From: Mobula hypostoma
Taxonomy: Eukaryota
Reading direction: 5' to 3'
DNA length: 64,000 nt
Assembly (NCBI RefSeq): GCF_963921235.1
Contig: NC_086124.1
Span: forward strand, 27,776,001 to 27,840,000
The notes beneath the pieces were generated by a model that was not told the origin of the DNA, did not search any database, and saw only the letters and a list, made by a program, of their open reading frames with translations. A program made the position numbers and the translations under genes. This document shows positions 4,496-55,498 of this stretch, piece by piece. Position 1 is the stretch's first letter. The number at the start of each line of letters is the position of its first letter.

Positions 4496-5656
4496 GTGAA
4501 AAATAATAACAATAATAAATAAATATAAGGAACATGAGATGAAGAGTGCTTGAAAGTGAGTCCATAGGTTGTGGGAACATGTCAGTGATGGGGCAATGGA
4601 ATTATCCACACTGGCTCAGGAGCCTGATGGTTGAGGGGTAATTACTGTTCCTGATCCTGGTGGTGTGAGTCCTGAGGCTCCTGCATCTCCTTCCTGATGG
4701 CAGCAGCGAGAAGAGAGAATGACCTGGGTCACTATAATTGTTAAATGTTGCTGTTTTCTCGTTGAATGTCACGCCCTGATCAACACACCACAGCATCCAG
4801 ACCATCTCCTCTCACAGTCTGCCGGAACCTCAGGTCCCACACCAACAGGTTCAGGAACAGTTATTACCCCTCAACCATCAGGCTCCTGAAGCAGCGTGGA
4901 TAACTTCACTCACCCCATCTCTGAACTGATTCTACAACGAATAGACTCACTTTCAAGTACTCTACAACTCGTGTTCTCAGAATTATTTGTTTGTTTGTTT
5001 AATATTTTGAACTTTGACTACGATTAACGGAGTGAAGCTCCCTCCACTCTGTCCCATTACTCACTCCCGGGGTCAGACACAGAGTGAAACTCCCTCCACA
5101 CCGTCCTATCACACACTCCCGGGCTCTGAGTTTATGAATTTTATACATCTTCATTCCAAACTGGTGTTTAGCTGATGATCCGTGCTCACTTTCCATTTTA
5201 TTTTACTTGGACAATATAAAAACAGTTTCAATTTTGCATTTTCTTTTCACATCATTAATTCTCACCCTCCCAGGTGCAGGTGACAGTGTTTAGAAACTTC
5301 CCTGCAGAAAACGTAAAAGAAAAAGGAAAAGACTGGTTAAACACAGAGTGACTGATAGATGGGTGCAAAGCAAAGTTTTTCACTGCACTTCGAGACGTGA
5401 TAACGATGAACCAATTTTCCTTTGCTGGTTACAGGTCTGTGGGACTGTCAGACAAGACTCAGACTGGAAGGGTGACTTGCTGACTGTGGTAAGACTGGCA
5501 ACACTGCAAAGTCTGACCAATCACTTCAGAAAACGTCAACGGCACTCACCTTCCCCTGGGTTGTCTCCACCTGTCAGGAGGTTACTTACTGCAGAATCTC
5601 CCCGGGCAAACTCCTCCCCGCCTGCAAGAGAACACACCGAAGCTGAAACCCCTGAT

Positions 5657-6104: not shown

Positions 6105-6216
6105 CTTTTGTGCAACGCTCTGCCCAGGTACAGTGTTACCAGCAACCCGATAACTCCCACTATGACTCCGACTGCACAGACAATAATCCCGGATGTGGGC
6201 ACAGGAGGAGGCAGAT
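6105..6216 (-). pseudogene. WA: WA-like connecting peptide and TM exon (intact, 112 nt)
   Basis: ctttaccccacag|...|gtgagg. Translates (D)LPPPVPTSGIIVCAVGVIVGVIGLLVTLYLGRALHK, with the class II alpha TM pattern C-x-x-G-x-x-x-G-x-x-G (compare HLA-DRA VVCALGLTVGLVG). Confidence 0.9.
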
Positions 6217-7621: not shown

Positions 7622-8300
7622 ATCGGTATTTACAGGGGGTCCCGCGGAGTGTGTCAGTATTTACCGGGGGTCCCGGGGAGTGTGTCGGTATTTACAGGAG
7701 GTCCCGGGGAGTGTGTCAGTATTTACAGGGGGTACCGCGGACTGCGTCAGTGTTTACAGGGGGTCCCAGGCAGTGTGTCAGTATTTACAGGGGGTCCCGG
7801 GGAGTTTGTCAGTACTTACAGGCGGTCCCAGGGAGTGAGCTGGTATTTACGGGGTGTCCCGGGGAGAGTGTTGGTGTTTACGGGGGTTCCCGGGGAGTGT
7901 GTCAGTATTTACAGGGGGTCCCGGGGAGCGTGTCGGTATTTACAGGGGGTCCCGGGGAGTGTGTCGGTATTTACAGGGGGTACCGCGGAGTGCGTCAGTA
8001 TTTACAGGGGATCCCGGGCAGTGTGTCAGTATTTACAGGGGGTCCCGGGGAGTGGGTCGGTATTTACAGGGGGTCCCAGGGAGTGTGTCAGTATTTACAG
8101 GGGGTCCCGGGGAGTGTGTCAGTATTTACAGGGGGTCCCGGGGTGCGTGTCAGTATTTAAAGGGGGTCCCGGGGAGAGTGTTGGTAATTATGGGGTGTAT
8201 CGGGGAGTTTGTCGGTATTTATAGGGGGTCCCGAGGAGTGTGTTGGTATTTACGGCGTGCCCTGAGCAGAGTGTTGGTATTTAAAGGGGGGTCCCAATGA
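7622..8300 (+). repeat. 31-bp GC-rich minisatellite, about 22 copies
   Basis: Unit about GGTATTTACAGGGGGTCCCGGGGAGTGTGTC; it explains the repetitive ORFs at 7568-8300. Confidence 0.95.
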
Positions 8301-8498
8301 GTGTGTCAGTAGTTCCAGGATCTTTGAACTTGTATCAGGATTTCAGGGGTCTCAGGAATGTTGATAAAATCTAACGGACAGTAAGGCTGTCAGGATTGAG
8401 AGGCCTTGATGTTTACAGTTTTGCTCCGTAACAGAAACCTTGGTTTTAGATACGTGACCCATGCTATTCTCTCCCTGTCGCTTTCCCAGCCAACATAC

Positions 8499-8781
8499 CT
8501 AGTGAGCACCTCAGCCCTTCTTCAAGGCTGACGTGTGCTGCCCGACAGCTGAATGTGTCCCCGCCCTTTGGCTCGATCCCAATGTACTTGCAGACGTTGA
8601 AGGTCCAGTCTGACTCCACCATCAGCTGCGATGATTGGACAGGCCCGGTGAACGGCTGCCTGTTGATCAGGAAGCTGAGCTCGATCTCAAATGGTTAGAA
8701 GTTCTCAGTGTAACACTACAAGGGTGTTCGACTTCTCTGGAGCATAGCCGTCTTCCGTCCAGATGTGGACGGTGGGTTTCT
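8499..8781 (-). pseudogene. WA: WA-like alpha2 exon, b2m-like Ig C1-set domain, disrupted
   Basis: gtgtcccag|...|gtatgt, 283 nt (282+1). Corrected frame reads KPTVHIWTEDGYAPEKSNTL*CYTENF*PFEIELSFLINRQPFTGPVQSSQLMVESDWTFNVCKYIGIEPKGGDTFSCRAAHVSLEEGLRCSL. Both Ig cysteines are present, and SQLMVESDWTF aligns with b2m SDLSFSKDWSF. Confidence 0.92.
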
Positions 8782-8954
8782 CTGGGACACGGAGCAACAG
8801 TCACCGTGAACAGGTCAAAGGTAAATGTCGATGTGGAAAGGTCAGCGTGAATGGGGCAAAAGTAACTGTGAATGTTCACAGGTTTGTCCTGAACACAACC
8901 AAACCTGTCCCTGAAATTCTGGGCAAATCAGGCGTAAGAGGGCCTCAAAGCTTC

Positions 8955-9190
8955 AGAGAAGGGATATATAAAGGTTTAGCGAAAGGGCAAAGGTCAGGGA
9001 TATGGAAAGGTTTAGTGAAAGGGCAAAAATCAGGGATATGGAAAAGTTTAGTGAAAGGTCAAAGATCAGGGATATGTAAAGGTTTAGCGAATGGGCAAAG
9101 ATTAGGGATATGGAAAGGATTAGCGAAAGTGCAAACATCAGGGATATGGAAAGGATTAGTGAAAGGGCAAAGATCAGGCAGATATACGAA
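8955..9190 (+). repeat. 36-bp tandem repeat, about 6.5 copies
   Basis: GGGATAT recurs every 36 nt from 8961; unit about TCAGGGATATGGAAAGGTTTAGTGAAAGGGCAAAGA. Confidence 0.9.
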
Positions 9191-10116: not shown

Positions 10117-10389
10117 TTCTCAGGACGCTCGAACTGTTCGTGAACTTCAGCATCTCCTTAGTGATGTCCAGCTGCCAGATCTGGATCCCGGTCGACCTCT
10201 CCTTGAACTGGTTCACCTCATCTTAGCCGAGTTCCTTTACCCTGTCTGTCTCAATTCTCTTGATGAAGAAGGTCTGGCGCTGGTAATCGTGGAAAAGAAG
10301 GGGGGAGGTGTTCGCGTCGAAGACCTTGCCGTTGGTTTCGGAACTCGGGCTGTAGCTGTAATACAGCCTTTCAGAGATGCTTTTAAACA
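10117..10389 (-). pseudogene. WA: WA-like alpha1 exon (273 nt, one in-frame stop)
   Basis: ctttattccaag|...|gtgagt, phase 1/1. Reads VFKSISERLYYSYSPSSETNGKVFDANTSPLLFHDYQRQTFFIKRIETDRVKELG*DEVNQFKERSTGIQIWQLDITKEMLKFTNSSSVLR. It has a C-terminal N-glycan sequon (NSS), as MHC alpha1 domains do, and joins in frame to the alpha2 exon. Confidence 0.8.
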
Positions 10390-16210: not shown

Positions 16211-19200
16211 GAGGGGAGTGTCCGCGATGATTTTTCCTGCACACTTCTTTGTCCTGGACACGCACAAGTCCTGCAGTGATGGTAAACTGCAGCCAATGCA
16301 GGGCACTGCCCTCGCAGTTCACTGTAGTTTTCGTCTACTGTGCGCGGATACAGTGAGATGATTGCTGTTTTCTTAGGAGGTTAAGGAAATTCTGCTCGTC
16401 ACTGACCATCCTAACTTCTGTCGAGAGTGTCCTGGCTGGTTACATCATGGCTTGCATGCGCAGGAATAGAAGGAGCTGCAGTATTAGTGGACTCAGGCCA
16501 ATGCATCACAGTCCCACCCCTTCTCACCATCAGTAGTGTTTGCCTCAGGAAAGCAACATCAAAGATTGCTGACCACTCAGGGCCACACCATCACTGCGCA
16601 GCTCCCATCGGTACAGGAGCCTGAAGTCCCACCCCACCAGGTTCAGAATCATCGACTTCCCTTCAACCATTCGGTTCTGCAACTGACCGGCACAACTCTA
16701 ATCACTACCTCGGTACAGTAACTCACCTTGATTACCGCTGGATCATGGTGTAGAAATATCTCTATTTTTCCCTTTCAGGGTTCTTTTGAAGACGCTGACC
16801 TGGAGTTACATGCTGACTTCAGTTCCTTGCGGGAATGGGACCCGCTCTCGGGGTCTCACGACTGGCCGTTATTCGTTATGCCAAGGACGCGGCCTAGAAG
16901 ACGCGCGAGCCTTCAGGGTTCTGGGATTTTGTGGCTCTGGAGGCGTGCGGACTCGAGGTCGGTGCCTCAGCAGGAATTTGGTGTGCCGTAGCAGCAGAGA
17001 GCTGGCTGCTAGCTGTGTGCCCAGAGACCCGAGATCTTTGGGCACAGAGCTCGGAAAAAGCGACGCAACAGACTTTTAACACCGTGAATCAGCGAGTGGC
17101 TTTGTTATGTCTCCTCTCTCGCTGTGAAACAGGGACATCTCTTTTTCCCTCATTTGGGAGAGAGAGAGAGAGCCCATGGTATGTTGAATACCGGGTGAAG
17201 GAGTAGTCTTTGGGCTACTACAAGTCTGTCTGTTTATTGATGCTTTGCTGTACGCTGGAGTGCTTGGTGAGGTGTGCAGCTGCTTTTTCGCTGGTGGGGA
17301 GGGGGTCATTGCTTTGCTGCTGCTTGTGCGTAGGAGGGGGAGCTGGGGGCGGGGCTTTGGAGTTCCTCCGTATTCGTTGATGTTTGCGAAGAAAAAGATA
17401 TTCAGGATTTATATTATATACATTTCTCTGACATTAAATGTACCTTTGAGAATTGCTACCTTTCTTGTATTTCCCTTGTAGTTTAACATTCTTGAGCTTG
17501 CCTTTTACATAATCACCTGTTCAGTGATTTTTCCAGCAATTACAGTATAGTGTTTCTCTATTTTTCTGGAAGCTTCTTATTTTGTCATGCCGCTTGAATC
17601 CAGCTATTTTTAGGTTGTTATCTCCAGTCTGAGTATGTCCTTTGTTCTATGGAATGCTGAAAGGCCTCGACAGAGTGGGTGTGGAGAGGATGTTTCCAAT
17701 GGTGGGGAGAGTCTAAGACCAAAGCACACAGCTTCAGATTGGAGGGGCATCCTTTTAGAACAGAGATGTGGAGCAATTTCTTTAGCCAGAGAGTGGTGAG
17801 TCTGTGGAATTTTTTGCCACAGGCGGCTGTGGAGGCAAACTCATTGGGTGTGTTTAAGGCAGAGGTTGATAGGTTCCTGATTAGTCAGGGCATGAAGACA
17901 GGAGACTGGGGCTGAGAGGGAAATGGATCGGCCATGGTGAAATGGCGGAGCAGACTCGATGAGCCAAATGGCCTAATTCTGCTCCAATATCTTATGGTCT
18001 TTATTAGGTATGCCTGCTTGATAATACAAATATCTAATCAGCCAATCGTGTGGCAGCAGCTCACTGCATTAAAAAGTATTTTTCATAAAAGTATTTCAAC
18101 ACACTGCTTTTCAAGATACTTTTTCGAACAAGCTAGTGTAAGTTTTCTTCTGTCCTGTTACACTGAAGGACTTTGAGTCAAGGCAAACTATTTATTTGAC
18201 TTTACCAGGAGTGACAGAAGGGTGTTGCAGGGTTGCCAGGGCTCCCTAGCTGTAGAGGAGAAAAGCTTAGATCAGATTATTTTGAGATTAAAAGCAAGTA
18301 ATGCTCAGGCTTTAGAAGGCATTGGTCAGACCACACTTGGAGCATTGTGAACAGTTTCAGGTCCCTTAGGTGTTGGCATTAGAGAAGGTCGAGAGGAGAA
18401 TGGTCCTGGGAATGAGAGGGTTAATAGATGAGGAGCATTTGATGGCTCAGGGATGTACTTGCTGGTGGTTAGAAGAATGATGGGGGATTCTCAATGACAC
18501 CTATTGAATATTGAAAGTCTTAGATAATGGATGTGGAGAGGATGTTTCCAATGGTGCAGGAGTCTAGGACCACAGGGCATAGAAGAAAAGAGACACTTTA
18601 GAACAGAGATGAGGAGGAATTTCTTTAGGCAGAGGGTGGTGAATCTGCAGAATTCATTGCCACAGATGACCGTGGAGGCAGAGTCACTGGGTGGATTTAA
18701 AGTGGGGGTTGATAGGTTGTTGTTTAGTAACGGCATTAACGGTTACGAGGAGAAGGCAGGAGAATGGGGTTGAGAGAGTAATAAAAAGGCCAATCGAATG
18801 GCAGAGAAAATCCGATGGGCTGAATGGCCAATTGGTCTTAAATCAGCCATTATTGTATGGAGACTCAATGGGCCCAATTCTGCTCCTCTGCCTTACAGTC
18901 TTATTGCCACCACTCAGCCAACTATGTAATGCAAGTCCCTTCAACATCAATAAGTTCCAAGTTACCCCCATTGACAAAGCACTCACCAATTTCCTCTCCC
19001 GTTACCATGGGAAATAGCAGGGCCATTAAGAAGCCGAAGAGGTCCATGTCTGTGGATGGCTCCTCTCTCCAGGAGCAATAAAAAGATGTGAACTGGGACT
19101 GTCCTGTTTATGAACGGGGCTTAGATTTTTGCTGACTACACAAGCCATGGTGAAGTAATTCAACTCCGCTGCTAGCGTGTCGATTTTATGAGTAACATTA

Positions 19201-22713: not shown

Positions 22714-23009
22714 TGTCTTTATTCCTTCTGCCAAAGTGCAGGACCATACACTTCCACTAGACTATACTTCATCTGCCTCTTCTTTGCAACCTCCACTTTA
22801 TATATACCCGATCCTGGAACATTTTAGGCACAGAACGCCAGATAGAAGTATACAAAGGAAGGGAAATAAACACTTGAAGTCATTAGGAGACAAGCAGGAG
22901 GCTGGTACAGCCTGCTCCCAGTGGGTGGAGTCAGGTGAAGTCCAAGGAATCCAGAACAGGTTTGCTCAGTACAATTGCTCAGCTGGTCCACCTCACTTCA
23001 AATACTCAC

Positions 23010-23028
23010 CTGTTTCGCTCAGACGCAT
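23010..23028 (-). pseudogene. WA: Candidate WA first (leader) exon, 3' part
   Basis: Strong phase-1 donor ACAG|GTGAGT at 23010/23009, compatible with the alpha1 exon. The nearest ATG (23028) gives only MRLSET; the open upstream frame reads LEVIVGSLMRLSET without an ATG. Confidence 0.45.
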
Positions 23029-23054
23029 CAGAGAGCCCACTATTACCTCCAAAG

Positions 23055-23121
23055 ATGAGCGTTTGCTGCAGGTTGGCCTTCGCGGCTCTCCTAGTGGTCT
23101 CTGTCGCGGCCACCCAGAGCG
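23055..23121 (+). CDS. WB: WB-like exon 1, signal peptide MSVCCRLAFAALLVVSVAATQS
   Basis: ATG in AAAGATGA context, hydrophobic core, donor G|GTAAGT. Confidence 0.9.
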
Positions 23122-26100
23122 GTAAGTTGGCTCAAATCCTCTGGCACGCCACCGGACTGTCTTCCCGTAGGTCTGCGCCTCGGACCGTCTCCTAGCACAG
23201 GCTGTGAGGAGGAATTGGGGAGCTCTGAGCCACACCAGATTGGGGGCGGGGGGCGGGGGGCAGGGGATTGGTTAGAAGCTGTTCAAAGTTAGGAGAGACT
23301 TTGATAATGTTCATGGTGGGAAGCTGTTCTCACAACCCGGTGATTCAGTCAGAAAGAAACAGGGAAAGGTAAACTAGAAACTGGTAAAGAAAAAAAAATA
23401 TGATTCTATATTGTCTCTCTTTTAAACCAGATTTCTGGAGACAGATAGACAGGAAGGGTATCACACACAAAGAACTCAGATGATCGAGATGGCGCAGGCG
23501 GCAATTTGCGGGCGGCTCAGAAAACTTCTAGATATACAATGTTTCTTCTGAAGTGTTATCACTGCAGTCTGCAGCCTGTAATTTCTTTTTTAGGTTGTTA
23601 GTTGTTTTGTTTTGCATTTGCAGTTTACCTTCTTTGCCTGTCTTTAGCTTGTGTGTAGTTTTTCATTGATTCCTTTGTGTTTGACTGCGAATACCCGCAA
23701 GGAAATGAATCTCAGGGTGGTACGACGTAGATGTACTTTGATAAATAACTTACTTTGACGTCTGGTGGAGAGAAATAACCTGCTGATGTTTCAGGCTGTG
23801 ATGATGACAGCAGTGTGTGTGTGTGTGTGTGTGTGTACAGGGTCTGCATTTCCAGCACCTACAGGGTCTCGTGTCAGGAAGGGTCCTCACAAAGATCTCA
23901 CTCTGGGTATAATGGTGCCCGTGGCCTGTACAGGCTCACCCTCTGGGTAAAATGATCTCTGTGGTGTGTACAGGCGCACCCCCTGGGTAAGACGATCCCC
24001 ATGGGGTGCAGACATCCCACCCTGCAAAAACTGATTTCAGAGAGGTAGCATCATCAATTTGCGGGAGTCTTCCGGAAGAGGTGGGATGTCTGCAATAGAG
24101 TAGCTCCTTAGCAGCCAGCCAGCTAGTTTAAATAAGGTTAGCTATGCTAATGAACGAATGACACCTGTTAAACTCACCTCAACTTGTCTTTTACAGTCTT
24201 AACCCACCATGGGCAATAGAAAAGTCACTGTTGCAAACAGTGCAGCGAGCAACACTGTCGTTATTTTTTACCCCTATTAGGCAGGGGTACACTTTAGTGT
24301 AGTCTGGGGTGACGCACGTTTTATATTTTCTTTCTTTGGAACACTCTGCCATGGTGCGCTCTCGCTGTCTCTCTTGTGCTCTCGCTTGCTTGCTCTCTCG
24401 CGCGCTCTCGCTTGCTTGCTCTCGCGCGCTTTCTCTCTCGCTCACTCTCAAAAAACTTGATTTCTGTGATATTGTATATAATTTGCGGGCATCAGGGAGC
24501 CACTATTCATATGCAGGAGACTCCCGGAACTTCCGGGAGAGGTGGGATGTCTGGGTGTGTACAGGCCTACCCTCTGGGTAAAACGATCCCTGTGGAGTGT
24601 ACAGACCCACCCTCTGGGTAAAACGATGCCCGTGAAATATACAGGCCCACCCTCTGGGTAAAACGATCCCTGTGGTGTGTACAGGCCCATCCTCTGAGTA
24701 AAACGATCCCTGTGGTGTATACAGACCCACCCTCTGGGTAAAACGATACCCATGAAATATACAGGCCCATCCTCTGGGTAAAACGATCCCTGTGGTGTGT
24801 ACAGACCCACCCTCTGGGTAAAACGATACCCGTGAAATATACAGGCCCACCCTCTGGGTAAAACGATCCCTGTGGTGTATACAGACCCACCCTCTGGGTA
24901 AAACGATCCCTGTGGTGTATACAGACCCACCCTCTGGGTAAAACGATACCCGTGAAATATACAGGCCCACCCTCTGGGTAAAACGATCCCTGTGGTGTAT
25001 ACAGACCCACCCTCTGGGTAAAACGATCCCTGTGGTGTATACAGACCCACCCTCTGGGTAAAACGATCCCTGTGGTGTATACAGACCCACCCTCTGGGTA
25101 AGACGATACCCATGAAATATACAGGCCCACCCTGTGGGTAAAACGATGCTGCGAAGTGTCTAACAATGGGTTGTTATTGCTTCTTTTAGATATGCACCTC
25201 TTTCACGTCCAGTGTGAGTGCCTCTTCCGTGGCCTTGAAGTGGACGACATACGCTTGCGTTACGCCTATGATGGTGTTACTATCATGTACTACAACACGG
25301 AGATTAAGAGGTATGTTGCAGCCCAGCCCATGGCACAGGCTGAGGTAGACAGGCGGAACTCGGAGCACGACTATGTTACATCGGTGCCTCACCGAATTGA
25401 GAGCATCTGCGATGAGATCAAGCAGGCGGTCAGATCAAGCAACATCACCCTGGAAAACATGGGTAAGATAGTTTAAAATTTACGATCACGTGTATGTCAA
25501 AACACCTTGTGTGCATTAACCATCAATACATCCCAGTGTGTGCTGGGGGCAGCCCGCCAGGGTCACCACACAATCCGCTGCCAAGATAGCACGCCTACAA
25601 TACTCCAGCGAACCCGGACACCATCGGGCTTTGACCTCTCCAATGGACTCACAGATTTGGCTCCTGCGGACGGGCCTTGACTTTCGAACCCTGACCCTGG
25701 GACACACTGATCACCGAACACCTGGCCTTGAAATCCAGACTCGCCAATGATGGGACCTCGAACTCCGCACCACGTCTGCGTCGCTGGTCTTCGAGCTTCA
25801 CATCAGTAGATAGGTCAAACACAGCACCATTGACCCAACTTCTCCCCACCCATCAAAGGGCCAAAATCAAGGCGGACCCCCTTGGTGGCCTTTGGTCCCT
25901 ATCCCTGGAAAGCTTTCCTAGCTAAACTTAGCTGTTCATTCAGGGCCTCGAGCAGTCCCTCCAGGTGAGGCAACACCTCACCTGCAAATCTTCTGGGGTC
26001 ATTCCACTGTGTCTGGGCCTCCTTGATGTTGGTGAGACCCACCATAAATTGGGGGGTCAGCTTCATCGAGTACCTCCGCACCATCCGCCACCAGTGGGAT

Positions 26101-41100: not shown

Positions 41101-44100
41101 CAGGCTATCAGAATGCTCTCTACGGTACAACTGTAGAAGTTCTTGAGTGTATTTGCTGACATGCCAAATCACTTCAAACTCCAAATTCTATCAGTCTGGT
41201 CCACGTACCATCAATCTAGAATATGTTCCATCAATCAGTCACCGCTGATTAACAGAAACCCTTTCTCCAGTCCTGCTGAAGGGTTTTGGCCCGAAATGTC
41301 GACTGTACTTTTTTCCATAGATGCTGCCTGGCCTGCTGAGCTCCTCCAGCATTTTGTATGGGTTGCTCGTATTTCTAGCATCTGCAGATTTTCTCTTGTT
41401 TGTGATTCAATAACTTGCAGTGTTCTGTTCTCCAATTCCTTCACAGCTCCTACCCATACCAGAGCCTTCATGCAGAAGAAACGGGGTCAAATGTACCTGG
41501 TGTGCACGGCCAGGAACTTCTTCCCCCGGGACATTAAAGTGCACTGGGTCAGAAACGGGGAAGTCGCTGACAATGGATCAGACACGACCAACGTTGTCCC
41601 TCAAAGCAATGGAGCCTTTCAAGTTAGGAGCGTCCGCCCCCTGGATGGAGACAGCTGGGGGTACGTCTGTCAGGTGGAACACGAGGCAGTTGATGGGAAG
41701 TTGCAGATACCTCTTGGTAAGAACAGCGAGTTGGGGAAATGTCGACTGATGTGATAAAAAACATTGATATCTACTTGATGACACAGAATCCCTCATCGTC
41801 CCTTTCTGTCCCCAAGTAAGTCCCAATAGCTTGAGACCTCTCTCATTGTCTATGCTACTGGCAATTATTATCATCAAGTCATACAGCTGAATACAAGGCC
41901 ATTCAGCCCAACACATCCATACTAACTAACAATCACCAGTACACACCGACTCTCCTCACTGAGGCTCATCCCCTTTTTTGGCGGAGAATCTTGTGAGATC
42001 CTGAGATTCTGAGAGCGATGTCGGTGGGAGCTTGGCTCCTGGTAGGGTCACCCATTGTGGTGAGGGTGGGGGGAGATTCCAGATAAGTGGCAGATGGAGT
42101 TTAACCCAGCTTGATGTGAGGTATTGCATCTTGGTAGGGCAAATGTAAGGCGACAGTACACCGTGTTGCTGAGTAGAGAGATCTTGGGATTCAAGTTCTT
42201 AGGACTTTGAAAGTGACTACACAGGTGGTTACGAAGGCTTATGGAATGCTTGCTTTTATTAGTCAAGACATTGAGTTCAAAGGTCAAGAGGTTATGTTGC
42301 ATAAACTCTGGTTAGGCCACATCTGGACTACCGCATACAGATCTCATCATCAGGAAAGATGTTGAGGCTTTGGAGAGGGTGCAGAAGAGGTTTACCAGAA
42401 TGCCGCCTGGTTTAGAGAGCATGTGCTATCATGGAAAGCTGGGCAAACTTGGGTTGTTTTCTCTGGAGTAGCAGAGGCTGAGGGGAGATCTGAGAGAGGT
42501 TTACAAGATTATGAGCAGCAGAGATGGAGTGGACGGGGGGGGGGGGATGAGTACCTGTTTCCCAGGGTTGAAATGTCTAATTCCAGAGGGCATGCATTGT
42601 AGGTGAGAGGGGCTAGGTTCACGGGGGATATGAGGGGTAGTGTTTTACTCAGAGTTGTGGACGCCTGGAATGCGCTGCCTGGTATGGGGGTAGAGGCAAA
42701 TACATTAGAGGCTTTTAAGAGATGTTTGGAGAGGCACATGGATGTAATGGAGATAGAAGGATATGGACATGGTATAGGTCGGAGGGATTAGTGTTTGATG
42801 TGCTTTTTAGTTGGTTCAGCACAACATTGTGGGCCAAAGGGCCTGTTACTGTACTGTCCTATGTTCTAAAGAGCATTTCAACTGAGATCTCAGTGGTGGA
42901 GCTGGCGGAAGATGATAACACATGGCAGCAGCAATGAAGGCGGGGGAAGGCTGCAGTGGTGAAGGATCCCCAGTCGTTTTGCATTCCAGGCCACGGGACC
43001 CTGACCCCGATCTGTCAAGGACCATGTGGTGGCTGCCAGTGCATCAGCCTCCCCACACAGAGCCACTCCTAGATGATCTCCTTTAGACCATAAGACAAAG
43101 GAGCAGAAGTCGGCCATTCGGCCCATCGGGTCTGCTCCACCATTTTATCATGAGCTGATCCATTCTCCCATTTAGTCCCACTCCCCCGCCTTCTCATCAT
43201 AACCTTTGATGCCCTGGCTACTCGGATACCTATCAATCTCTGCCTTAAATACACCCAATGACTTGGCCTCCACTGCTGCCCATGGCAACAAATTCCATAG
43301 ATTCACCACCCTCTGACTAAAAAAATTTCTTCGCATTTCTGTTCTGAATAGGCGCCCTTCAATCCTGAAGTCATGCCCTCTCGTACTAGACTCCTCCATC
43401 ATGGGAAACAACTTTACCACAACCACACTGTCCATGCCTTTCACCATTGGAAATGTTTCTATGAAGTCTCCCCTCGTTCTTCGAAACTCCAAGGAGTACA
43501 GTCCAAGAGCGGACAAACGTTCCTCACATGTTAACCCTCTCATTCCCGGAATCATTCTAGTGAATCTTCTCTGTACCCTCTCCAACGTCAGCACATCCTT
43601 TCTTAAATAAGGAGACCAAAAATGCCCACAGCACTCCAAGTGAGGTCTCACCAGCGCCTTATAGAGCCTCAGCATCACATCCCTGCTCCTATACTCTATT
43701 CCTCTAGAAATGAATGCCAACATTGCATTCGCCTTCTTCACTACCGACTCAACCTGGAGATTAACCTTAAGGGTATCCTGCACGAGGACTCCCAAGTCCC
43801 GTTGCATCTCAGAACTTTGAATTCTCTCCCCATTTAAATAATAGTCTGCCCGTTTATTTTTTCTGCCGAAGTGCATAACCATACACTTTCCAACATTGTA
43901 CTTCATTTGCCACTTCTCTGCCCATTCTTCCAATCTATCCAAGTCTCTCTGCAGACTCTCCGTTTCCTCAGCACTACCGGCCCCTCCACCTATCTTCATA
44001 TCGTCAGCAAACTTAGTCACAAAGCCATCTATTCCATAATCCAAATCGTTGATGTACAATGTAAAAAGAAGCGGCCCCAACACGGACCCCTGTGGAACAC

Positions 44101-47100
44101 CACTGGTAAATGTCAGCCAACCAGAATAGGATCCCTTTATTCCCACCCTCTGTTTCCTGCCAATCAGCCAACGCTCTATCCACGTATGTAACTTTCCCGT
44201 AATTCCATGGGCTCTTATCTTGTTAAGTAGCCTCATATGTGGCACCTTGTCAAAGGCCTTCTGAAAATCCAAATATACAACATCCACTGCATCTCCCTTG
44301 TCTAGCCTACCGGTAGAGAGAACAACTTTGAGAGAACAACCACTTGAGGGAACATCTTACTTGACTCGAGTGATTACCCTTCTACCAATTCTCTTTACAG
44401 GGATTTGGATCGTAGCCTCCTATGTCTTGCCAACTCAGATGCAATCGGTACAAAGTTATCGTCACTTGAATGAGCCAATCCCTCCTGCCTTGTGAGAAAC
44501 ACACGAGGGAAATTAAATTTTACAACAGTCTCATTGGAGACTGGATAATTTCCCCACCCCCAAGTGGAAATGGACAATGCTCCTGCTCTCCCCTCTCTAA
44601 CTCAAACACGTCTAGCACATCAGCCATCTTGTCAGCAGAATAAGAACCTAGAACCTAGTGGGACTAGGTGAGAGTAAGAGTTCGGCACGGACTAGAAGGG
44701 CCGAGATGGCCTGTTTCCATGCTGTAATTGTTATGTGGTTAAAATCAATCCAACCCTTCCCTTTCACAGAGCCCTCCATTTTACTATCATCTATGCGCCG
44801 ATTTAAGACTCCTAAATGCTCCTAATGTATCTGCCTCTACTACCACCCCATGCACAAACACTCTCTGTGTAAAAAGTCTCACCTCTGACACTCCCCTATA
44901 CTTTTCTCCAATCACCTTCAAGTTGTGCCTCCTCATAGTAGCCAGTTCCACCTTGGCTACTCGATCTAGGCCTCTTATCACCATATACGCCTCTACACCT
45001 CTTCTCCTCCTTTGCTCCAAAGAGAAAACCCTGAGATTGCTCAGCCTATCCTCAGAAGGTATGCCCTCCAATCTGGGCAGCATCCTGGTAAATCTCCTCT
45101 GCACCCTCTCTAAAGCTTCCACACCCCTTCAGTGTTCAGTGACTGGAACCGAACACAATACTCCAAAATTAAGATTATTGTGCATCATATTGAACTGAGT
45201 CACAGTGTAATCCCCTTGTCTGTGCAATTGTTTGCATCTCCCTATGGTTCAACACCAAACTGCGCTGAGACAGATTAACAGAGTTTTATTGTACATACAG
45301 ACACACCTAGGATGGTGGGGTGGATGTATGTCTCTGCCAAAGGAGGTGTGAGACAGTCCTTCCCTCTGCTAGTCTGCAGGTCACCCTTGGGCAAATGTAG
45401 CATCTGCTTAGCCCCCCGATCAGGGTCACGTGAAACCATGGGAGCAGGTGGTGGATGGTTGTGTGAAAAGCCAGTGCAGATCACAAGTCCTGGTTATGCA
45501 ACCACTGACACCAGGCAGACACTCTCTGAAGAGTACTGATAATGGCTGGGGTCACTCGTCTTGTAAAGACAATAAGAAACCGCTTCTGTAGAAATATTTG
45601 CCAAGAGCGATTGTGGTCATGAAAGGGCCATGATTGCCCACGTCATACGACACGGCACATAACGAACAGACAGTCCCATCAGAATTATTTTGGCATTAGA
45701 CGATACATTGGGGAACAGTGCTGCTAGATTTTCAGAAAAATTACCCAGACATCGCAAAATCTCCAACGTTTTCTCCTCAGAACACAACGCACTGGTTGAG
45801 AATGAAGATTTGATCATTGTTGGAGTTGTTCTGGGGGTACTCGGGCTGTGCGCAATGGTGGTGACTGGAAGCTTGTACTACTGCTCCTCAGAGGGTAAGT
45901 GGCTGCAAGACTTACAGAGAGACTCAGGGAACAGTCACCGGACTGTTTTCTGCTAAAGTGCTTCAAGAAAGGATCAAACTTGTTTTTGATGAACCACCGG
46001 GGAGCCACTCCCATGGAGCACCTTCTCTGGGTCCATCACCAGAGGCAGGGTTTCCCAGTGGCCACCCATTTCAATCCCACTTCCCATTCGGACTTCCTCC
46101 CATCTAGAGCGGAGAGCTGACCAGCTGCATCACGGCCTGGCGTGGAAACCCCAGTGCCCAGGACTGGAGAGGCCAACAGAACGAGGAGGATACAGCCCAG
46201 TGGTTCCTTAAGGTTGCCATAGCCGGGGTGGGCCAAGGTGGGGATGAGCTCCCACTACCCATTACGTGGCCTCAGTCATGGCGAAGACTAGGCCGGAAGC
46301 CACAGTGTCACCTGTTAGCAGCTGCCCAGGGGGAGTGTCCATGATGGGGTGTCTATGCTTGAGTCAGGGTTGCCATCCCCTCCCCCCTTTCCCCATCCCT
46401 CCTGCACATCCCCAGTGATTTTTGGACAGAAGACAAGCCATACTGTACTCGACTGCAGACTGCTGCAATGTTCATGGACCCAGGGGCTTGGACTACCCTT
46501 TTTGGGTGATTGTATTTTACTGCTATCTTACGGTACTGTGAAAAAGCCCTCGGCACGTATAGGCGCGGAAGACGTTTGCACGGTGGATTTGTCAATGTGG
46601 AGTGGACAGCGAGTTTGTAAATCTGGCGGGAGCAAAGGATGTTGGGAGTGGTGAGGGTGGCGTGTGGGACAGGTGGCAGAGAAGGAGTTGCCAGGGGAGG
46701 GAGAGGGGTGGCATGGATGCAGACACACCCAGCCCTGAGACACCAGGCAAGGTTATTTGATTCTAAACAATTGGTTTATTTATCATTACAGAACGACTCT
46801 CCTGTGCTTCCCGCTCCCTCCCCTCTCCCTTCCCCTTTCCCCAACCATGATTCCCCTCTCCCCGTCCCCTTCCCACTCTCACTCCACAATAGAGATCCAC
46901 ATCAGAATTATGAAATCATGTCATGAAATTATATTTTTTTGCAGCAATATATAAAATTACTACAGTACTGTGCAAATGTCTTAGGCACTCTAGCGATATA
47001 TATGAGTGATTCTTCAATTAGCGGCCCTTTTGACTACTTGAAATTCTGAAAAATGAAATTTCTGGAAACTCTGTTTGCTTTATATTATAATCTTTATTTT

Positions 47101-50100: not shown

Positions 50101-53100
50101 TGTGAACATTATCGGGACATGGGTGGAGTGGTGGTACAGATTCGATGAGCCAACTGGCCTCATTCTGCTCCTATACCTTATGGTATAACTTCTCCACACA
50201 GAAAGGGTGGTGGGTATACGAAACGAGCTGCCAGGTGATGCTGTAGAGGTGGCTACATTTGCAATGTCTAAAATGCATGGACAGGAAAGGTTTGGATCAA
50301 CGTTGGCCAAACACAGGCAAGTGGGACGAGCTTACATAGACAATTGGTTGGCATGGATGAGTGGGGCCAAAGGACCTGTTCCTATGGGATATAAATCTAC
50401 GACTCGATCGATGTATGGTTTATTTTTTTTTATATTTAGAGATACAACATGGTAACAGGCCCGTGCTGCCCAAATGCACCAAGTGACCAATTAACCTGCT
50501 AACCTGTATCTGTTTGGGTTTTGGGAGGATACCTGAGCACCTGGAGGAAACCATGTGGTCACGGGGAGAAGGTACAAACTTCTTGCAGACAGTGGCGGGA
50601 ATTGAACCCGGGTCACTGGCGCTGTAATGGCATTACATTAACCATTATGCCACTATGCCACTCCAGTGTAGCAAAGAGCTTCGTATTTTCAGTGCTAAAG
50701 GTAGGAAAATCTTTAAAAAAGCAATAATTTAGATGAAAGAAATTGACATTTTTGGTTGACGTATTGAACATAGAACAATGCAGGCCCTTACAGAAGTGAT
50801 CGAAACAAGAGATATCCAGACAGAGTGCAAAGTGGGAGGGTGTTCCCATTGTCAGCAGGGTCAAAGTTCAGAGGTCACATGGATACAACATAAGGAGAAG
50901 AGAATTCAGGAGAAATTTTTCCACATGGTGTGGTCAGAATCTCGAAGGCTCTGTCAGCAGGTGCGGTGGAGGTGAGCACCACTGGGGCTTTGGAGGGCGA
51001 ATTGGATAAGGACGTGTTAGAAAAATGTGCCGTGGGGAGATGGGGTGGAGTTGGGGAAGTTCTCTGGCAGAGAGCGGTCAAAGACATGATGGGATGGCAA
51101 GCCCTGTTTTTCTGCTGGAACTACTCTGATTTTTCTTTTCAGGCTTGTTGTCAACCATCTGATCTCTTGTTTCTCCCACAGGGGCAAAAGTGCTGAACTC
51201 TCAGCAGACAGGTGAGAAAAATCAATGCTGGTCTCGGGACGGGACGGGACGGGGGGGCACGGAAATCTCCAAAATGTCTATGTGGTGAAGGAACTTAGAT
51301 CAATATTACATTAGATTATGAGGACACGCAGTCCTCTTTTATTGTCATTTAGTAATGCATGCATTAAGAAATGATACAATGTTCCTCCAGAATGATATCA
51401 CAGAAACACAAGACAAACCAAAACTGAAAAACTGACAAAAACCACATAATTATAATATATAGTTACAACAGTGCAAAGCAATACCGTAATTTGATAAGAA
51501 CAGACCATGGGCACTGTAAAAAGAAGTCTCAAAGTCTCTAGAAAGTTCCATCATCTCACGCAGACAGTAGAAGGAAGAGAAACTCTCCCTACCATGAACC
51601 TCCAGCGCCGCAAACTTGCCGATGCAGCATCCTGGAAGCACCCGACCACAGCTGACTCTTGAGTCCGTCCGAAAACTTCGAGCCTCTGACCAGCCCTCCG
51701 ACACGGAGCACCGAGCACCATCACTGCCCAGCGCTTCGACCCCGGCCCCAGCAACAGGCAACAGGCAATAGGCAAAGCCGAGGATTTGGGGCCTTCCCTT
51801 CCGGAGATTCTCAATTGCACAGTAGCAGCGGCAGCGAAGCGGGCATTTCAGAAGTTACTCCAGTGTTCCTCCGCACTTCTTACGTCTGTCTCCATCAAAT
51901 CAGGATTGTGCACTGCCCCTAGTTACAAATACGATATCATTTCGGAGTGGCCGCGCGCGCTGCGTCACGCCGCCATCTTCTCCTCCCCTCCCCATACATT
52001 CGCTGGTATTCAGAAGAATGAGAGGGAATCTTATAGAAAGATGCATATAAAGTTATGAAAGGAGAAGATAAGACAGAGGCATAAGACCATAAGACAACGG
52101 AGCAGAATTAGGACATTTGGCCCATTGAGAGTCTGCTCCACCATTCCGTCACGGCTGATTTATTATCGCTCTCAATCCTGTTCTCCTGCCTTTTCCCTGT
52201 AACCTTTGGTGCCATTACTAATCAAGAACCTGTTGACCTCCATATTAAATATATGCGTGACTTGCACACATGGTGACGAAAAGTTTACATCCTTTGATGA
52301 TAATAAATTTGCTTTGAACTGGCACGGAGGAGAGGAGAGGAGGTGTGGGGTAGATCAGCCATGACTGACAGGGCAGAATTGAGGGGCCGAGTGGCCTACC
52401 TGTGCTCTTTGTCTTGATGTAATTGCCATGGGTGTCGGGGTGGAGATACATCTCTACCAACGGTGGTGTAAGGTGCTCCTTCCCTCCGCTGGCCGGCAGG
52501 GCACCCTTGGGCAAGGTGTAGCACCTGCTTAGCCCCCGATCAGGGTCCTGTGAAGCCATGGGAGCAGGTGGTGGACGGTCATATGAGCAACTGGCGCATA
52601 TCACAAGTCTTGGTTGTGTGACCACTGATGCCAGGCAGACAATCTCTGAAGCGTATTGGTGGGGCGGGGGGGGGTGGTCACCCGTCTTGTAAAGACACTG
52701 CCCAGAAAGCGGCAATGGCAAAGCACGTCTGTAGAAAAATTTGCCAAGAACAATCACGATCATGGAAAGTTCCACCTCATCTGACACAGCACATAACGAA
52801 TGAACGATTCACTTTGCAGGGCTCAGGAGGGCTTATTGCTAACCTGAGCCTTCTACTACAGCAGCGTGACCCTTCCAAGGGTCAAAGAGTTGTCACTGAT
52901 GAAGTTAAACTTTGAACCAACATTTCTTGCTCAGCCTCTTGTAAACAAGGAACAATGGAGTCCACGTTGGCCTAGTGATTGAAGAATAGGAATTTATTTA
53001 ATCTGTGGGACTCATTGCTACTGATGGCTGTGGAGACCAAACTTTGGGCATATTTAAAGTGGAGGTTTGATAGGTTGGGCATGTGGCCAAGTGGTTAAGG

Positions 53101-55498
53101 CATTTGTCTAGTGATTTGAAGGTTGCTAGTTTGAGCCTCAGCTGTGGCAGCATGTTTGTGTCCTTGAGCAAGGCACTTAACCACACATTGCTCTAGTGTC
53201 TGTACGAGGAGTGGCGCCCCACACAGACTTCCAATCTGCACCTCGAAAGGCATGAAAATGCCCGACACAGGCCTCTCATGGTCTGAGTCAACGTTCCCTC
53301 CCTCCCTCCCCGCCTTTGATAGGTTCTTGATTAGTAAGGGTGTCAAGACTGCAGCTAGCGGGGCACTATCTACGCCACCCCGAGCTACCTGCCAGCCTAG
53401 TCATCATATGGGAGCCCAAGCATGGGAGGATGAACCCTGGGCGCCCTCCCAAGACTATGGTCAACATGCTCCTGGAAGAGAGCGGCACGGCTAATGTAGA
53501 TGAACTGAACACACTGATGAAGGAGAGGGAGAAGTGGAGGGTTCGTCATCGTGCCTGATGCCGGCCCCTTAGGCCTGAGTGGACGTAGTAGTAGTAGTAA
53601 GGGCATCGAAGGTCACGGGGAGAATGGGGTTCAGAAGGATGAAAATCAGCCAGTTGGTCTGAAATCCTCTGTCTTATGGTGGTATGGTTTTATGGCAGGG
53701 TGTTGTTCGATTTCATGCCCTATGGCGCATTGGGCGGCATTTTTGGCGTTTCCGTAGCATTTGACTATTTTTTTGCGAGGCAGAGTTGGCGGCTCGACAC
53801 AGAAAGTGTGTAAAGAGCTGGCCGGATTTGAACTCAGGACCATTCGCCTCGAAGTCCAGTGCTGATGCCAGTACACCACTGGCCAGCTTTTATGGCAGGA
53901 TGATACAAGCCTAGGACAAGAGGGATCTTGGGGATACTTACCTCAGATAGGGCTTAAAGTTTTGACTTAAGTTTGGAGCTTAACAGCACACAATATCACT
54001 GCATCCTACAAGATGTCTGTTCTCTCTCTCTCTGTGCAGCAAAGTTCAATAACCAGCGGGGGCTGTGCCGGTTGAACACGTGCAACACGAGCGTTCGGTC
54101 CAGTGACTCTGGCGTCTCCAATTCCAGCGCCAGCTCAGGTACCAGTGTGCTTGTAAACCAGCCTACTCAGTGACCGGCTCCTCCAGTTCAGCCAAACCAC
54201 CATCACCGGCACTCACCCTCTTCAGCCTGCTCTCGAGATGGGCATGGAGGTTGACGGAGTTGGGGGGAAGTAGGGGTTGCGGATGAGGGGGAAGGAGGAG
54301 GAACTGGTTTCTACCTCAGTTTGTGGCAGCTGAGGGCCGGGGTGGGTAGGGTGCGAAGTGGACGGGGAGGGAAGAGAGGGTCAGGGAGGTGAAGGAGGAG
54401 GAGCTGGATTCCATGCTCAGGTAATGGTGTCTGGATGGTTGGGGGCGAGGAGGGGGAGGAATGGAGATTGATGGTGGAGGAGCTCATTCCCTACCCCAGG
54501 TAGTGGCGGCTGGGAGGAAAGGTAGAGGAGGCGATGGTTGGGGGGGAGAAGGAGCTCGTTCCCTCTCTCAGGTAGTGGTGGTTTGGTGGATGGAGGTGGA
54601 AGGGAGGGAGACAGAGGGGGTGAGGCGGAGATTGGGGGCTGGCTGAGTAAGTAGTGGCAGCTGGGGGGGTGGGGTAGAGGGCAGAGGGGGAAGAGGTGGA
54701 CAGGAGGGGAAGGTTAGCGGGGAGGGGTGGGAGTTTCTTCCCTCCTTCAGGTAATCCCAACTGGGGGGAGACGGGGAGGGGGACAGGTGGAGGGAGGGAG
54801 AGGTGGAGGGGAAGTTTGATTCCTACCTCTGTGTTGCTGGCTGGTTGGGGGGAGGAAGGGGGTGGTTAGAGAAGGGGGGAGAGGCTGATTTTCTACCTCA
54901 AGAATTGGAAGCTGGGTGGGCAGGGAAGGGGAGAGGTGGAGGAAGAGGACGAGCGGCTCTCTTCCTCAGATAATGGCTGATTGGGAGGACTGAGTGGGGG
55001 GCGGGTGATGGAGGTTACAACAAGGGGTTTGGGGATTTAGATCGGACCGCACTCTCCACCCACCCCACCAGCTTGTAGTCACGGTCAGGGGCCAGAGGCG
55101 GATGATGCTCCCGCTACCCCCCCCCGGTGTGGTCCAGCGGCCAAGGCACACTGCGCCAACGTCCAGAGGAGAGGGAGAGCTGGGGCGAGAGGGAGACCTT
55201 AACGCCTGCAGACTCCGGAGTCTGGAGCAACAAACAATCTGCTGGAGGAGCAGGACAGCATCCGAGGGAGGAAAGAGGTTCCTTGAAGTTTCGGGTCTCG
55301 GCTCAAAGCGCCAAGAATTCCTTTCCTTCCACAGATGCTGCTCAGCCGGTTGTGATCTTCCAGCACATTGTCTGTGGCTGAGGGAACAAGACTTCATCGA
55401 CCCTTTGCATCTTGCCCGTCTGTCGCGAGAGTTTCCGATCCACCGGCCATTGTATGTTCTTCTTTTCAGGTGATGGACTGACGAAACCTTCCTCTTAA
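23055..55498 (+). CDS. WB: MHC W-category beta chain (WB-like), about 293 aa; join(23055-23121, 25190-25462, 41447-41716, 45781-45894, 51182-51211, 54040-54138, 55470-55498)
   Basis: All junctions are GT-AG and phase 1. Summed length is 882 nt with no internal stop. Domain order is leader, beta1, Ig-C1, TM, tail, with class I-like YAYDG and PxxxGxFQ motifs in a class II-type two-domain chain. The three tail exons are less certain than the first four. Confidence 0.85.
23236..23275. promoter_or_regulatory. Two CCAAT boxes (ATTGG on +) flanking tandem GC boxes; candidate shared promoter element
   Basis: CAGATTGGGGGCGGGGGGCGGGGGGCAGGGGATTGGTT, in a CpG-rich patch about 210 bp upstream of the candidate WA first exon and inside WB intron 1. 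Confidence 0.5.
24009..24553 (-). mobile_element. Internally deleted hAT-like element (545 bp) with BED-finger remnant
   Basis: Perfect 13-bp TIRs CAGACATCCCACC / GGTGGGATGTCTG. The - frame has KYKT...YPCL...ARCTVCNSDFSIAHGG. No clear 8-bp TSD. Confidence 0.7.
24554..25146 (+). repeat. 40-bp minisatellite, about 15 copies, two interspersed variants
   Basis: ACAG(A/G)CCCACCCTCTGGGTAAAACGAT followed by CCCTGTGGTGT(A/G)T or ACCCGTGAAATAT. Degenerate units continue at about 23890-24008. Confidence 0.95.
25190..25462 (+). CDS. WB: WB-like exon 2, beta1 membrane-distal domain (273 nt)
   Basis: gcttcttttag|...|gtaaga. Reads DMHLFHVQCECLFRGLEVDDIRLRYAYDGVTIMYYN...ESICDEIKQAVRSSNITLENM, with a Cys11-Cys74 pair and an NIT sequon. 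Confidence 0.9.
26040..26630 (+). mobile_element. Penelope-like element, 3' fragment (related pieces at about 1-360, 34190-34750, 41270-41400, 60680-61290)
   Basis: Decayed GIY-YIG C-terminus (EEHYLIF...QPDGMN) followed by the pyrimidine-rich tract and the GATGCTGCCTGACCTGCTGAGTTCCTCCAGC-type end shared by all copies. Confidence 0.65.
29340..29975 (-). mobile_element. I-clade (Nimb-like) LINE fragment with RNase H and C-terminal Cys/His motif
   Basis: The - strand reads ICSDSAAA...FSWIPGHAGVEGNEIVD (RNase H) and RLRLGHCGLN...CDCGSPETVQHVLLSC. Confidence 0.8.
30827..34940 (-). mobile_element. hAT DNA transposon, both ends intact (4114 bp), decayed transposase
   Basis: 16-bp TIRs CAGGGG(C/T)GCAGTGCTA and 8-bp TSD GGCCCAAG (30819-30826, 34941-34948). 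Transposase pieces: FSVLIDES, SDGASVM, WHCLNHRLELAV, PISTAECERGFS. Confidence 0.95.
33705..34025 (-). mobile_element. Tigger/pogo-like transposase fragment (CENP-B-type HTH) inside the hAT element
   Basis: LLKSGTSLAEVG...EKALSVWLEDVSQKHIPVDGKIMREK. Confidence 0.7.
35385..36740 (-). mobile_element. Penelope-like element, RT C-terminus plus GIY-YIG endonuclease, decayed
   Basis: The - strand has YIDDCIGAASC (RT) and CGLLYIGEICRRLGDCFAKHL...HLIFHLGSLQPDGMNIDFS. Confidence 0.85.
36895..37455 (+). mobile_element. Rex1/Babar-type LINE, 3' end with (TAAAGTA)n tail
   Basis: HITQTNLPSLDSLHTARCRSSAARIIKDTTHP...LPSGRRIRSLKTRTARFGNSFFP, tail ATAAAGTATAAAGTATAAAGTA. Confidence 0.75.
37640..38660 (-). 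mobile_element. Gypsy pol remnant (RT and RNase H start)
   Basis: GSVRICGDFKVTIN...YPLPRMEDIF...FSKVDL...RCYLDDIIVTG. Confidence 0.9.
40570..41175 (-). mobile_element. Rex1/Babar-type LINE, 3' fragment (similar copy at about 55830-56440)
   Basis: FYSCTVESILIACITVWYGGATAQDRKKLQKVV. Confidence 0.7.
41447..41716 (+). CDS. WB: WB-like exon 3, beta2 Ig C1-set domain (270 nt)
   Basis: ttccttcacag|...|gtaaga. Reads APTHTRAFMQKKRGQMYLVCTARNFFPRDIKVHWVRNG...VVPQSNGAFQVRSV...YVCQVEHEAVDGKLQIPL, with canonical C-W-C. Confidence 0.95.
43085..44310 (-). mobile_element. CR1-clade LINE, 5'-truncated, with open 371-aa RT ORF (43172-44287)
   Basis: DVVYLDFQKAFDKVPH...[13 protein letters not shown]...FADD...LVRPHLECC. 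Many shorter CR1 pieces occur elsewhere. Confidence 0.95.
45781..45894 (+). CDS. WB: WB-like exon 4, connecting peptide and TM (114 nt)
   Basis: ttttctcctcag|...|gtaagt. Reads EHNALVENEDLIIVGVVLGVLGLCAMVVTGSLYYCSSE, with class II beta-type spaced glycines. Confidence 0.92.
47004..49060. mobile_element. Unclassified 2.06-kb AT-rich TIR element inserted in a palindromic Tc1-type MITE (46961-47003 and 49061-49090)
   Basis: Imperfect 20-bp TIRs GAGTGATTCTTCAATTAGCG / rc GGGTGATTCCTTAATTAGAG (16/20). Host halves are TACAGTACTGTGCAAATGTCTTAGG and CCTAAAACTTTTGCACAGTACTGTA. Confidence 0.65.
51182..51211 (+). CDS. WB: WB-like exon 5, cytoplasmic micro-exon (G)AKVLNSQQT
   Basis: ctcttgtttctcccacag|30 nt|gtgaga, phase 1/1. 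Confidence 0.6.
53075..53320 (+). mobile_element. tRNA-derived SINE with CORE/V-like central domain
   Basis: Head GGGCATGTGGCCAAGTGGTTAAGGC and central GTGTCCTTGAGCAAGGCACTTAACC. Confidence 0.6.
53345..53598 (+). mobile_element. RTE-like LINE, 3' end with (GTA)n tail
   Basis: RLQLAGHYLRHPELPASLVIIWEPKHGRMNPGRP, then GTAGTAGTAGTAG. Confidence 0.65.
54040..54138 (+). CDS. WB: WB-like exon 6, Ser-rich cytoplasmic exon (99 nt)
   Basis: tctctctctctctgtgcag|...|gtacca. Reads (A)KFNNQRGLCRLNTCNTSVRSSDSGVSNSSASS, phase 1/1. Confidence 0.7.
54250..55010 (+). repeat. G-rich degenerate tandem array (about 9 units of 70-100 bp)
   Basis: Recurrent core about GAGCTC(A/G)TTCCCT(A/C)CCTCAGGTAGTGG, separated by GGG/GAGG tracts. 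Confidence 0.65.
55470..55498 (+). CDS. WB: WB-like exon 7, last coding exon (G)DGLTKPSS*
   Basis: gttcttcttttcag|GTGATGGACTGACGAAACCTTCCTCTTAAG|gtaaaa; the stop lies 1 nt before a donor. Confidence 0.6.

Follow-up and report, generated by a model that had tools for sequence, protein, structure and literature searches.

The closest described relatives of the locus reported here are the W-category MHC genes, for which cDNAs of the banded houndshark were the founding material (Okamura et al. 2021, PNAS, PMC8713811). The alpha2 domain of the W-category alpha chain (WA) has in common with β2-microglobulin (b2m) the residues W61, L55, F/Y57 and Y8 and the lack of an Ig-core Trp at position 37; W61 is the residue that gave the category its name. 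Position 8 of WA alpha2 is aromatic (Y, rarely F) and is the partner of P57 in the beta2 domain of the beta chain (WB), whose published signature is W37, P57 and G61. Conventional class II chains have W at position 37 in the alpha2 and beta2 rows of the available portion of Dataset S2, and their beta2 domains always carry W at the position of the W in DWTF, a motif discussed below. A head-to-head arrangement of WA and WB genes has been published as well, and for the clustering of WA apart from other MHC chains, relative to b2m and class II, we rely on the same study (PMC8713811).

We analyzed a stretch of 64,000 nucleotides from contig NC_086124.1 of the devil ray Mobula hypostoma, hereafter the window. 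The exon at 8499–8781 on its minus strand very probably encodes the alpha2 domain, an Ig C1-set domain of b2m-like type, of a pseudogenised WA gene of the DS5-like lineage. The position that the initial annotation gave for this exon is supported by AG/GT boundaries, with the acceptor AG at 8783–8782 and the donor GT at 8498–8497, and the exon is entered in phase 1. Its length is 283 nt, compared with 282 nt (94 residues, without indels) in all 19 intact relatives. Because the domain takes 282 nt in all of these indel-free relatives, the window exon contains one extra base. The resulting frameshift lies within GTAG at 8716–8719 (minus strand), between NTL and CYTENF, where relatives have Y or F; counting one or another of these bases as extra makes the site read V, E or a TAG stop. 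The exon reads KPTVHIWTEDGYAPEKSNTL in one frame and continues, after the one-base shift, into CYTENF. It then meets an in-frame TAA at 8695–8697 (minus strand), where relatives carry Y, H or F (FYP, FHP or FFP), followed by an open run of 65 residues, PFEIELSFLINRQPFTGPVQSSQLMVESDWTFNVCKYIGIEPKGGDTFSCRAAHVSLEEGLRCSL. All three of these strings are found in the exon. Its string 'NTL*CYTENF*P' has the right letters but is not a single reading: two frames were merged, with NTL in one and CYTENF in the next.

To place the domain in a family, the 65-residue open piece was searched with phmmer, exhaustively, against 1.84 billion proteins. The best matches are full-length elasmobranch WA proteins of 244–263 residues (E=3.5e-20 to 2.4e-10), led by a skate WA protein at E=3.5e-20; conventional class II beta chains come next. 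The names of the top matches in NCBI and UniRef vary between class II alpha-chain-like and beta-chain-like. A second search, started from the skate protein, returned 18 relatives, two of which (P0040 and P0042) are entered as 'MHC class II alpha chain like protein [Triakis scyllium]'. Closest among intact proteins is the WA of Mobula birostris (P0037), to which the window gene is identical at 81/92 residues in alpha2 (88%), 70/89 in alpha1 (79%) and 34/37 in the TM exon; identity of alpha2 to the houndshark cDNA products is 59–60%. In the available part of Dataset S2, the 'WA DS5' rows align with the N-terminal half of alpha2 at every residue, and those of Dataset S3 align with the TM exon (PMC8713811). 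In a maximum-likelihood tree, the window copy is sister to P0037 (support 96/84), within a clade of rays that includes Hypanus and Pristis. The open alpha2 piece also matches the Pfam C1-set family at E=2.9e-8; this match, the phmmer score and the identity to the M. birostris protein together argue that the exon is not a chance resemblance. Pfam gave no family match for the alpha1 pieces, and in the window gene it found C1-set only and no class II alpha or beta domain. Since the intact P0037 likewise shows C1-set alone, the W-category alpha1 domain is not modelled by Pfam. Among the relatives, the annotated model P0038 of Carcharodon carcharias (391 aa) fuses a DS10-like WA alpha2 domain (LSFGEDWRF), which retains F at the position of b2m F56, to a full DS5-like WA; the model probably reads through from one WA gene into its neighbour.

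A hydrophobicity scan and tblastn with the relatives placed the rest of the gene, giving five WA exons on the minus strand. The leader exon at 18987–19047, encoding MDLFGFLMALLFPMVTGEEI and a split codon, is intact, has a GT donor and is identical to residues 1–20 of P0037 at 18 of 20 positions. The alpha1 exon at 10117–10389 (273 nt, phase 1) encodes no cysteines; it is interrupted at 10223–10225 by an in-frame TAA (KELG*DEV), where relatives mostly have Q and a few have E or R. The two exons downstream of alpha2, both intact, encode the connecting peptide and TM segment (6105–6216, LPPPVPTSGIIVCAVGVIVGVIGLLVTLYLGRALHK) and the cytoplasmic tail (5582–5621, R-RGGVCPGRFCSK followed by a TAA stop). 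The TM exon carries the glycine motif CAVGVIVGVIG of class II alpha type, and the glycine pattern of the helix is SGIIVCAVGVIVGVIGLLVTLYL in the window and SGIIVCAVGVITGVIGLLIGLYL in the houndshark sequence of Dataset S3 (PMC8713811). All WA splice junctions are AG/GT, entry into the alpha1, alpha2 and TM exons is in phase 1, and the codons split at the four junctions encode V, K, D and R, the same as in P0037. The alpha2 domain is thus spliced to a TM exon, as the initial annotation proposed: the phase-1 G joins the AT that starts 6216–6105 to give D-LPPPVPTSGIIVCAVGVIVGVIGLLVTLYLGRALHK. A b2m-like C1-set domain on a membrane-anchored, class II-type chain is therefore correct in kind, being the alpha2 domain of WA, although this copy is dead and nothing is actually tethered. 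Such a domain has been the published hallmark of WA since 2021 (PMC8713811) and is not new; what we describe is one more member, a broken one, of a known family. A search of the literature gave no publication on W genes in Mobula.

Several other features of the region were recorded. Minisatellites lie in the WA introns on both sides of the alpha2 exon, at 7626–8319 and 8960–9186; one repeats a 31-bp unit 22 times with 82% matches, and the other repeats a 36-bp unit 6 times or, described differently, a 108-bp unit twice. Long ORFs listed at these two places are repeat artefacts. A run of 134 N at 1235–1368 marks an assembly gap or a masked stretch.

On the plus strand, at 23055–55498, we find an intact W-category beta-chain gene (WB, Nds5-like) of seven exons: 23055–23121, 25190–25462, 41447–41716, 45781–45894, 51182–51211, 54040–54138 and 55470–55498. 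Its spliced translation is exactly the M. hypostoma protein P0050 (293 aa), with GT-AG at every junction and a second intron of 16 kb. The beta2 domain has the W37, P57 and G61 of the WB signature and is similar to the 'WB Nds5L' rows in the accessible portion of Dataset S2. The start codons of the two genes, at 19047 on the minus strand for WA and 23055 on the plus strand for WB, are 4.0 kb apart. The locus is a head-to-head WA/WB pair in which the alpha gene is dead and the beta gene is intact. A minus-strand leader at 22990–23010 (ORF MRLSETG), adjoining the WB leader, was considered and rejected: it has no signal peptide, and a leader resembling that of P0037 is present at 19047–18987. With 4 kb between the WA leader and the start codon of WB, the 5' coding ends of the two genes do not overlap near 22990–23280. 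With its WA dead, the intact WB has no partner in cis. As a tentative and rather unlikely proposal, it might pair in trans with the WA of a neighbouring pair in the same cluster, or act without an alpha chain, or the haplotype may be a segregating null.

By descent the window gene belongs to the WA family, but it is a pseudogene and not a working member. Three lesions were read, in one assembly, in two exons: the TAA in alpha1, and the extra base and TAA in alpha2. The reading frame, which would be open in a functional WA, thus contains two in-frame stops and one frameshift. Could the gene nevertheless be alive, the lesions having entered through faulty assembly or sequencing, or marking a null allele that segregates with functional ones? 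In favour of this, no splice site is damaged, three of the five exons are intact, as is the partner WB, and the decay is modest. We consider a live gene very improbable, however, because the three lesions are independent and two of them are base substitutions, not homopolymer indels. The pattern of replacements argues in the same direction. Of the 38 sites at which the other full-length proteins of the family do not vary, the window copy differs at four (G49R, Y98W, A115T and G131R, numbered on the conceptual translation), whereas the M. birostris and Hypanus proteins differ at none. A Tajima-type relative-rate count with Hypanus as outgroup gives 26 private replacements in the window copy versus 5 in P0037 (chi-square 14.2, p=1.6e-4), and the same count with Pristis as outgroup gives 21 versus 5 (p=0.0017); the two copies compared are sisters in the tree, with P0037 an orthologue or a recent paralogue. 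Radical changes at four family-invariant sites and an excess of 26 over 5 would not come from sequencing errors. The terminal branch in the maximum-likelihood tree is 0.15 for the window copy and 0.02 for P0037, and the excess of replacements together with the long branch would fit relaxed constraint. The private changes include Y8W, a G-to-R change in a conserved NG turn and an A-to-T change in CYAE. The inactivation of this WA copy is fairly recent, since no splice site has been lost and the leader, TM and tail exons remain intact.

Residues of the domain were equated with those of b2m through HMMER alignments of the 65-residue piece and of a 19-sequence family profile to bovine, mouse and human b2m. 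In these alignments, the assignments made in the initial annotation hold: the L of the window corresponds to b2m L54, the W of DWTF to W60, a Val to F56, and the W of HIW to Y10. We looked for an alignment in which DWTF would not occupy b2m D59–F62; against the mammalian b2m sequences the register was kept. In the numbering of PMC8713811, the window alpha2 domain carries the diagnostic W61, L55 and F37. W61 (in ESDWTF) is invariant in the 19 intact relatives and is the residue aligned to b2m W60. L55 and V57 are both present in QLMVESDW, and position 37 is F (IELSFLIN), as in houndshark WA DS5 in the part of Dataset S2 available. The initial annotation had also stated that class II alpha2 domains do not have this Trp-based contact set, in agreement with PMC8713811, where they show no conserved W61 or F57.

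The two departures from the b2m contact set, V57 and W8, have different histories. The initial annotation asked whether the change from F to V at the b2m F56 position occurs in functional relatives or arose after pseudogenisation. It occurs in the relatives: V is present at this position in 18 of 19 intact DS5-like alpha2 domains, among them the published houndshark cDNA products P0040 and P0042, and the one exception has F. V57 is thus the norm of the lineage and predates the decay of the window copy, so the idea that it arose after pseudogenisation can be set aside. V at the b2m F56 position is thus ancestral for the elasmobranch DS5-like lineage as a whole, the expressed houndshark genes included. 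F or Y is seen at 57 in DS10-like, teleost and salamander WA; the 'F/Y57' wording of PMC8713811 is therefore too narrow, as its own houndshark DS5 proteins (P0040/P0042) have V. Position 8, in contrast, is W in the window (HIWT) versus Y in all 19 intact DS5-like relatives, and F in houndshark DS10. The W at this position, equivalent to b2m Y10, is private to the window copy. We asked if W8 and V57 together could reflect functional re-tuning of the contact set at a time when the gene was still alive in the devil-ray lineage. Trp is still aromatic, and the WB beta2 domain retains P57. Re-tuning is highly improbable, though, as V57 is common to the intact relatives and not specific to the lineage, and Y8 is invariant in all of them, including the sister M. 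birostris protein. Moreover, W8 counts among the 26 private changes of a copy that also has three disabling lesions, and the step from TAY to TGG takes two base changes. That the invariant Tyr8 is altered only in a dead copy fits its proposed role at an Ig–Ig interface. If the lesions instead mark a null haplotype beside functional alleles, Y8W may have been tolerated in a working molecule.

When matched with the 65-residue piece, class II beta2 domains score E of about 6e-7 and b2m 5e-8 to 1e-6, and the profile of 19 family sequences gives 78 bits for class II beta2 and 74 bits for free b2m. DWTF alone is not specific to b2m, as class II beta2 carries DWTF too. A fold comparison meant to separate b2m from class II domains did not do so: an AlphaFold model of the P0037 alpha2 domain (pLDDT 92), superposed with Foldseek, matches b2m, class II beta2 and class II alpha2 equally well, at a TM score of about 0.90 for all. 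The domain family is equally near to class II beta2 and to b2m in profile score and in fold. Because profile and fold searches alone do not separate the two, the 'b2m-like' label depends on particular positions and on the phylogeny published earlier. An origin of the exon in a conventional class II beta chain (as beta2) or in a true b2m gene has a negligible probability: class II beta2 with GDWTF/Y does score as well as b2m with both piece and profile and superposes equally well (TM 0.90–0.91), but the window has F37 where the class II beta2 and alpha2 rows in the accessible portion of Dataset S2 always have W, the exon upstream encodes an alpha1 domain with no cysteine and 79% identity to WA alpha1, the TM exon has the alpha-type motif CAVGVIxGVIG common to houndshark WA, and true b2m has neither an alpha1 nor a TM exon, so that the gene model refutes both sources. 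F37 excludes a beta chain in particular, as do the lack of cysteine in alpha1, the glycine motif of alpha type in the TM exon and the level of identity to WA proteins.

From homology and the published work (Okamura 2021, PMC8713811), a mode of action can be proposed for intact WA. The C1-set domain would sit under the platform formed by alpha1 and WB beta1, beside WB beta2, in the position that b2m takes. It would use the same contact set as b2m in class I, with Leu55, the hydrophobic residue 57 (V57) and Trp61 packing into the platform, and the aromatic residue 8 would be placed against Pro57 of the WB beta2 Ig domain. Unlike b2m, WA would be held in the membrane by its own TM helix of class II alpha type, which is proposed to pair with the TM helix of WB through class II-type glycine motifs (PMC8713811). 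For the window copy, translation is predicted to stop in alpha1, and no alpha2 domain would be made.

The W-category matters for the origin of the class I/class II split. WA alpha2 is the closest known relative of b2m that is still on a membrane-anchored chain, a point already made in 2021 (PMC8713811). What this locus adds is small: a devil ray with a recently inactivated WA beside an intact WB, together with the findings on V57 and Tyr8 given above.

Comparing the window gene with the known systems shows that it is nearest to the DS5-like lineage of WA (houndshark WA_DS5 and P0037). It shares with that lineage the exon architecture, phase-1 splicing, W61, L55, V57 and F37, the alpha-type TM glycine motif and the head-to-head pairing with WB. 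It differs in being dead, with a TAA in alpha1 and an extra base and a TAA in alpha2, and in its private replacements, including Y8W and the G-to-R change in the NG turn. The likeness to b2m lies in the C1-set fold (Foldseek TM 0.90, rmsd 1.3–1.5 Å for the family model), the equivalents of L54 and W60, the DW(S/T)F motif in register, and the absence of an Ig-core Trp, which is L in b2m and F in the window. Identity is about 32%, however, and the window has V at F56 and W at Y10. Where b2m is a soluble, single C1-set domain, the window domain is coded between alpha1 and TM exons, in a gene model that matches full-length WA. With class II alpha chains the window gene shares the architecture of leader, alpha1, alpha2, TM and tail and the TM glycine motif, whereas their alpha2 domain, in the material available from PMC8713811, keeps the Ig-core W37 and does not have conserved W61 and F57 contacts. 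Class II beta chains have GDWTF/Y at the same position, an equal gap-free length and equal HMM and fold scores. They differ in a beta2 domain that keeps W37, a disulfide-bonded beta1 and a different TM motif, whereas the window has F37 and an upstream domain without cysteine.
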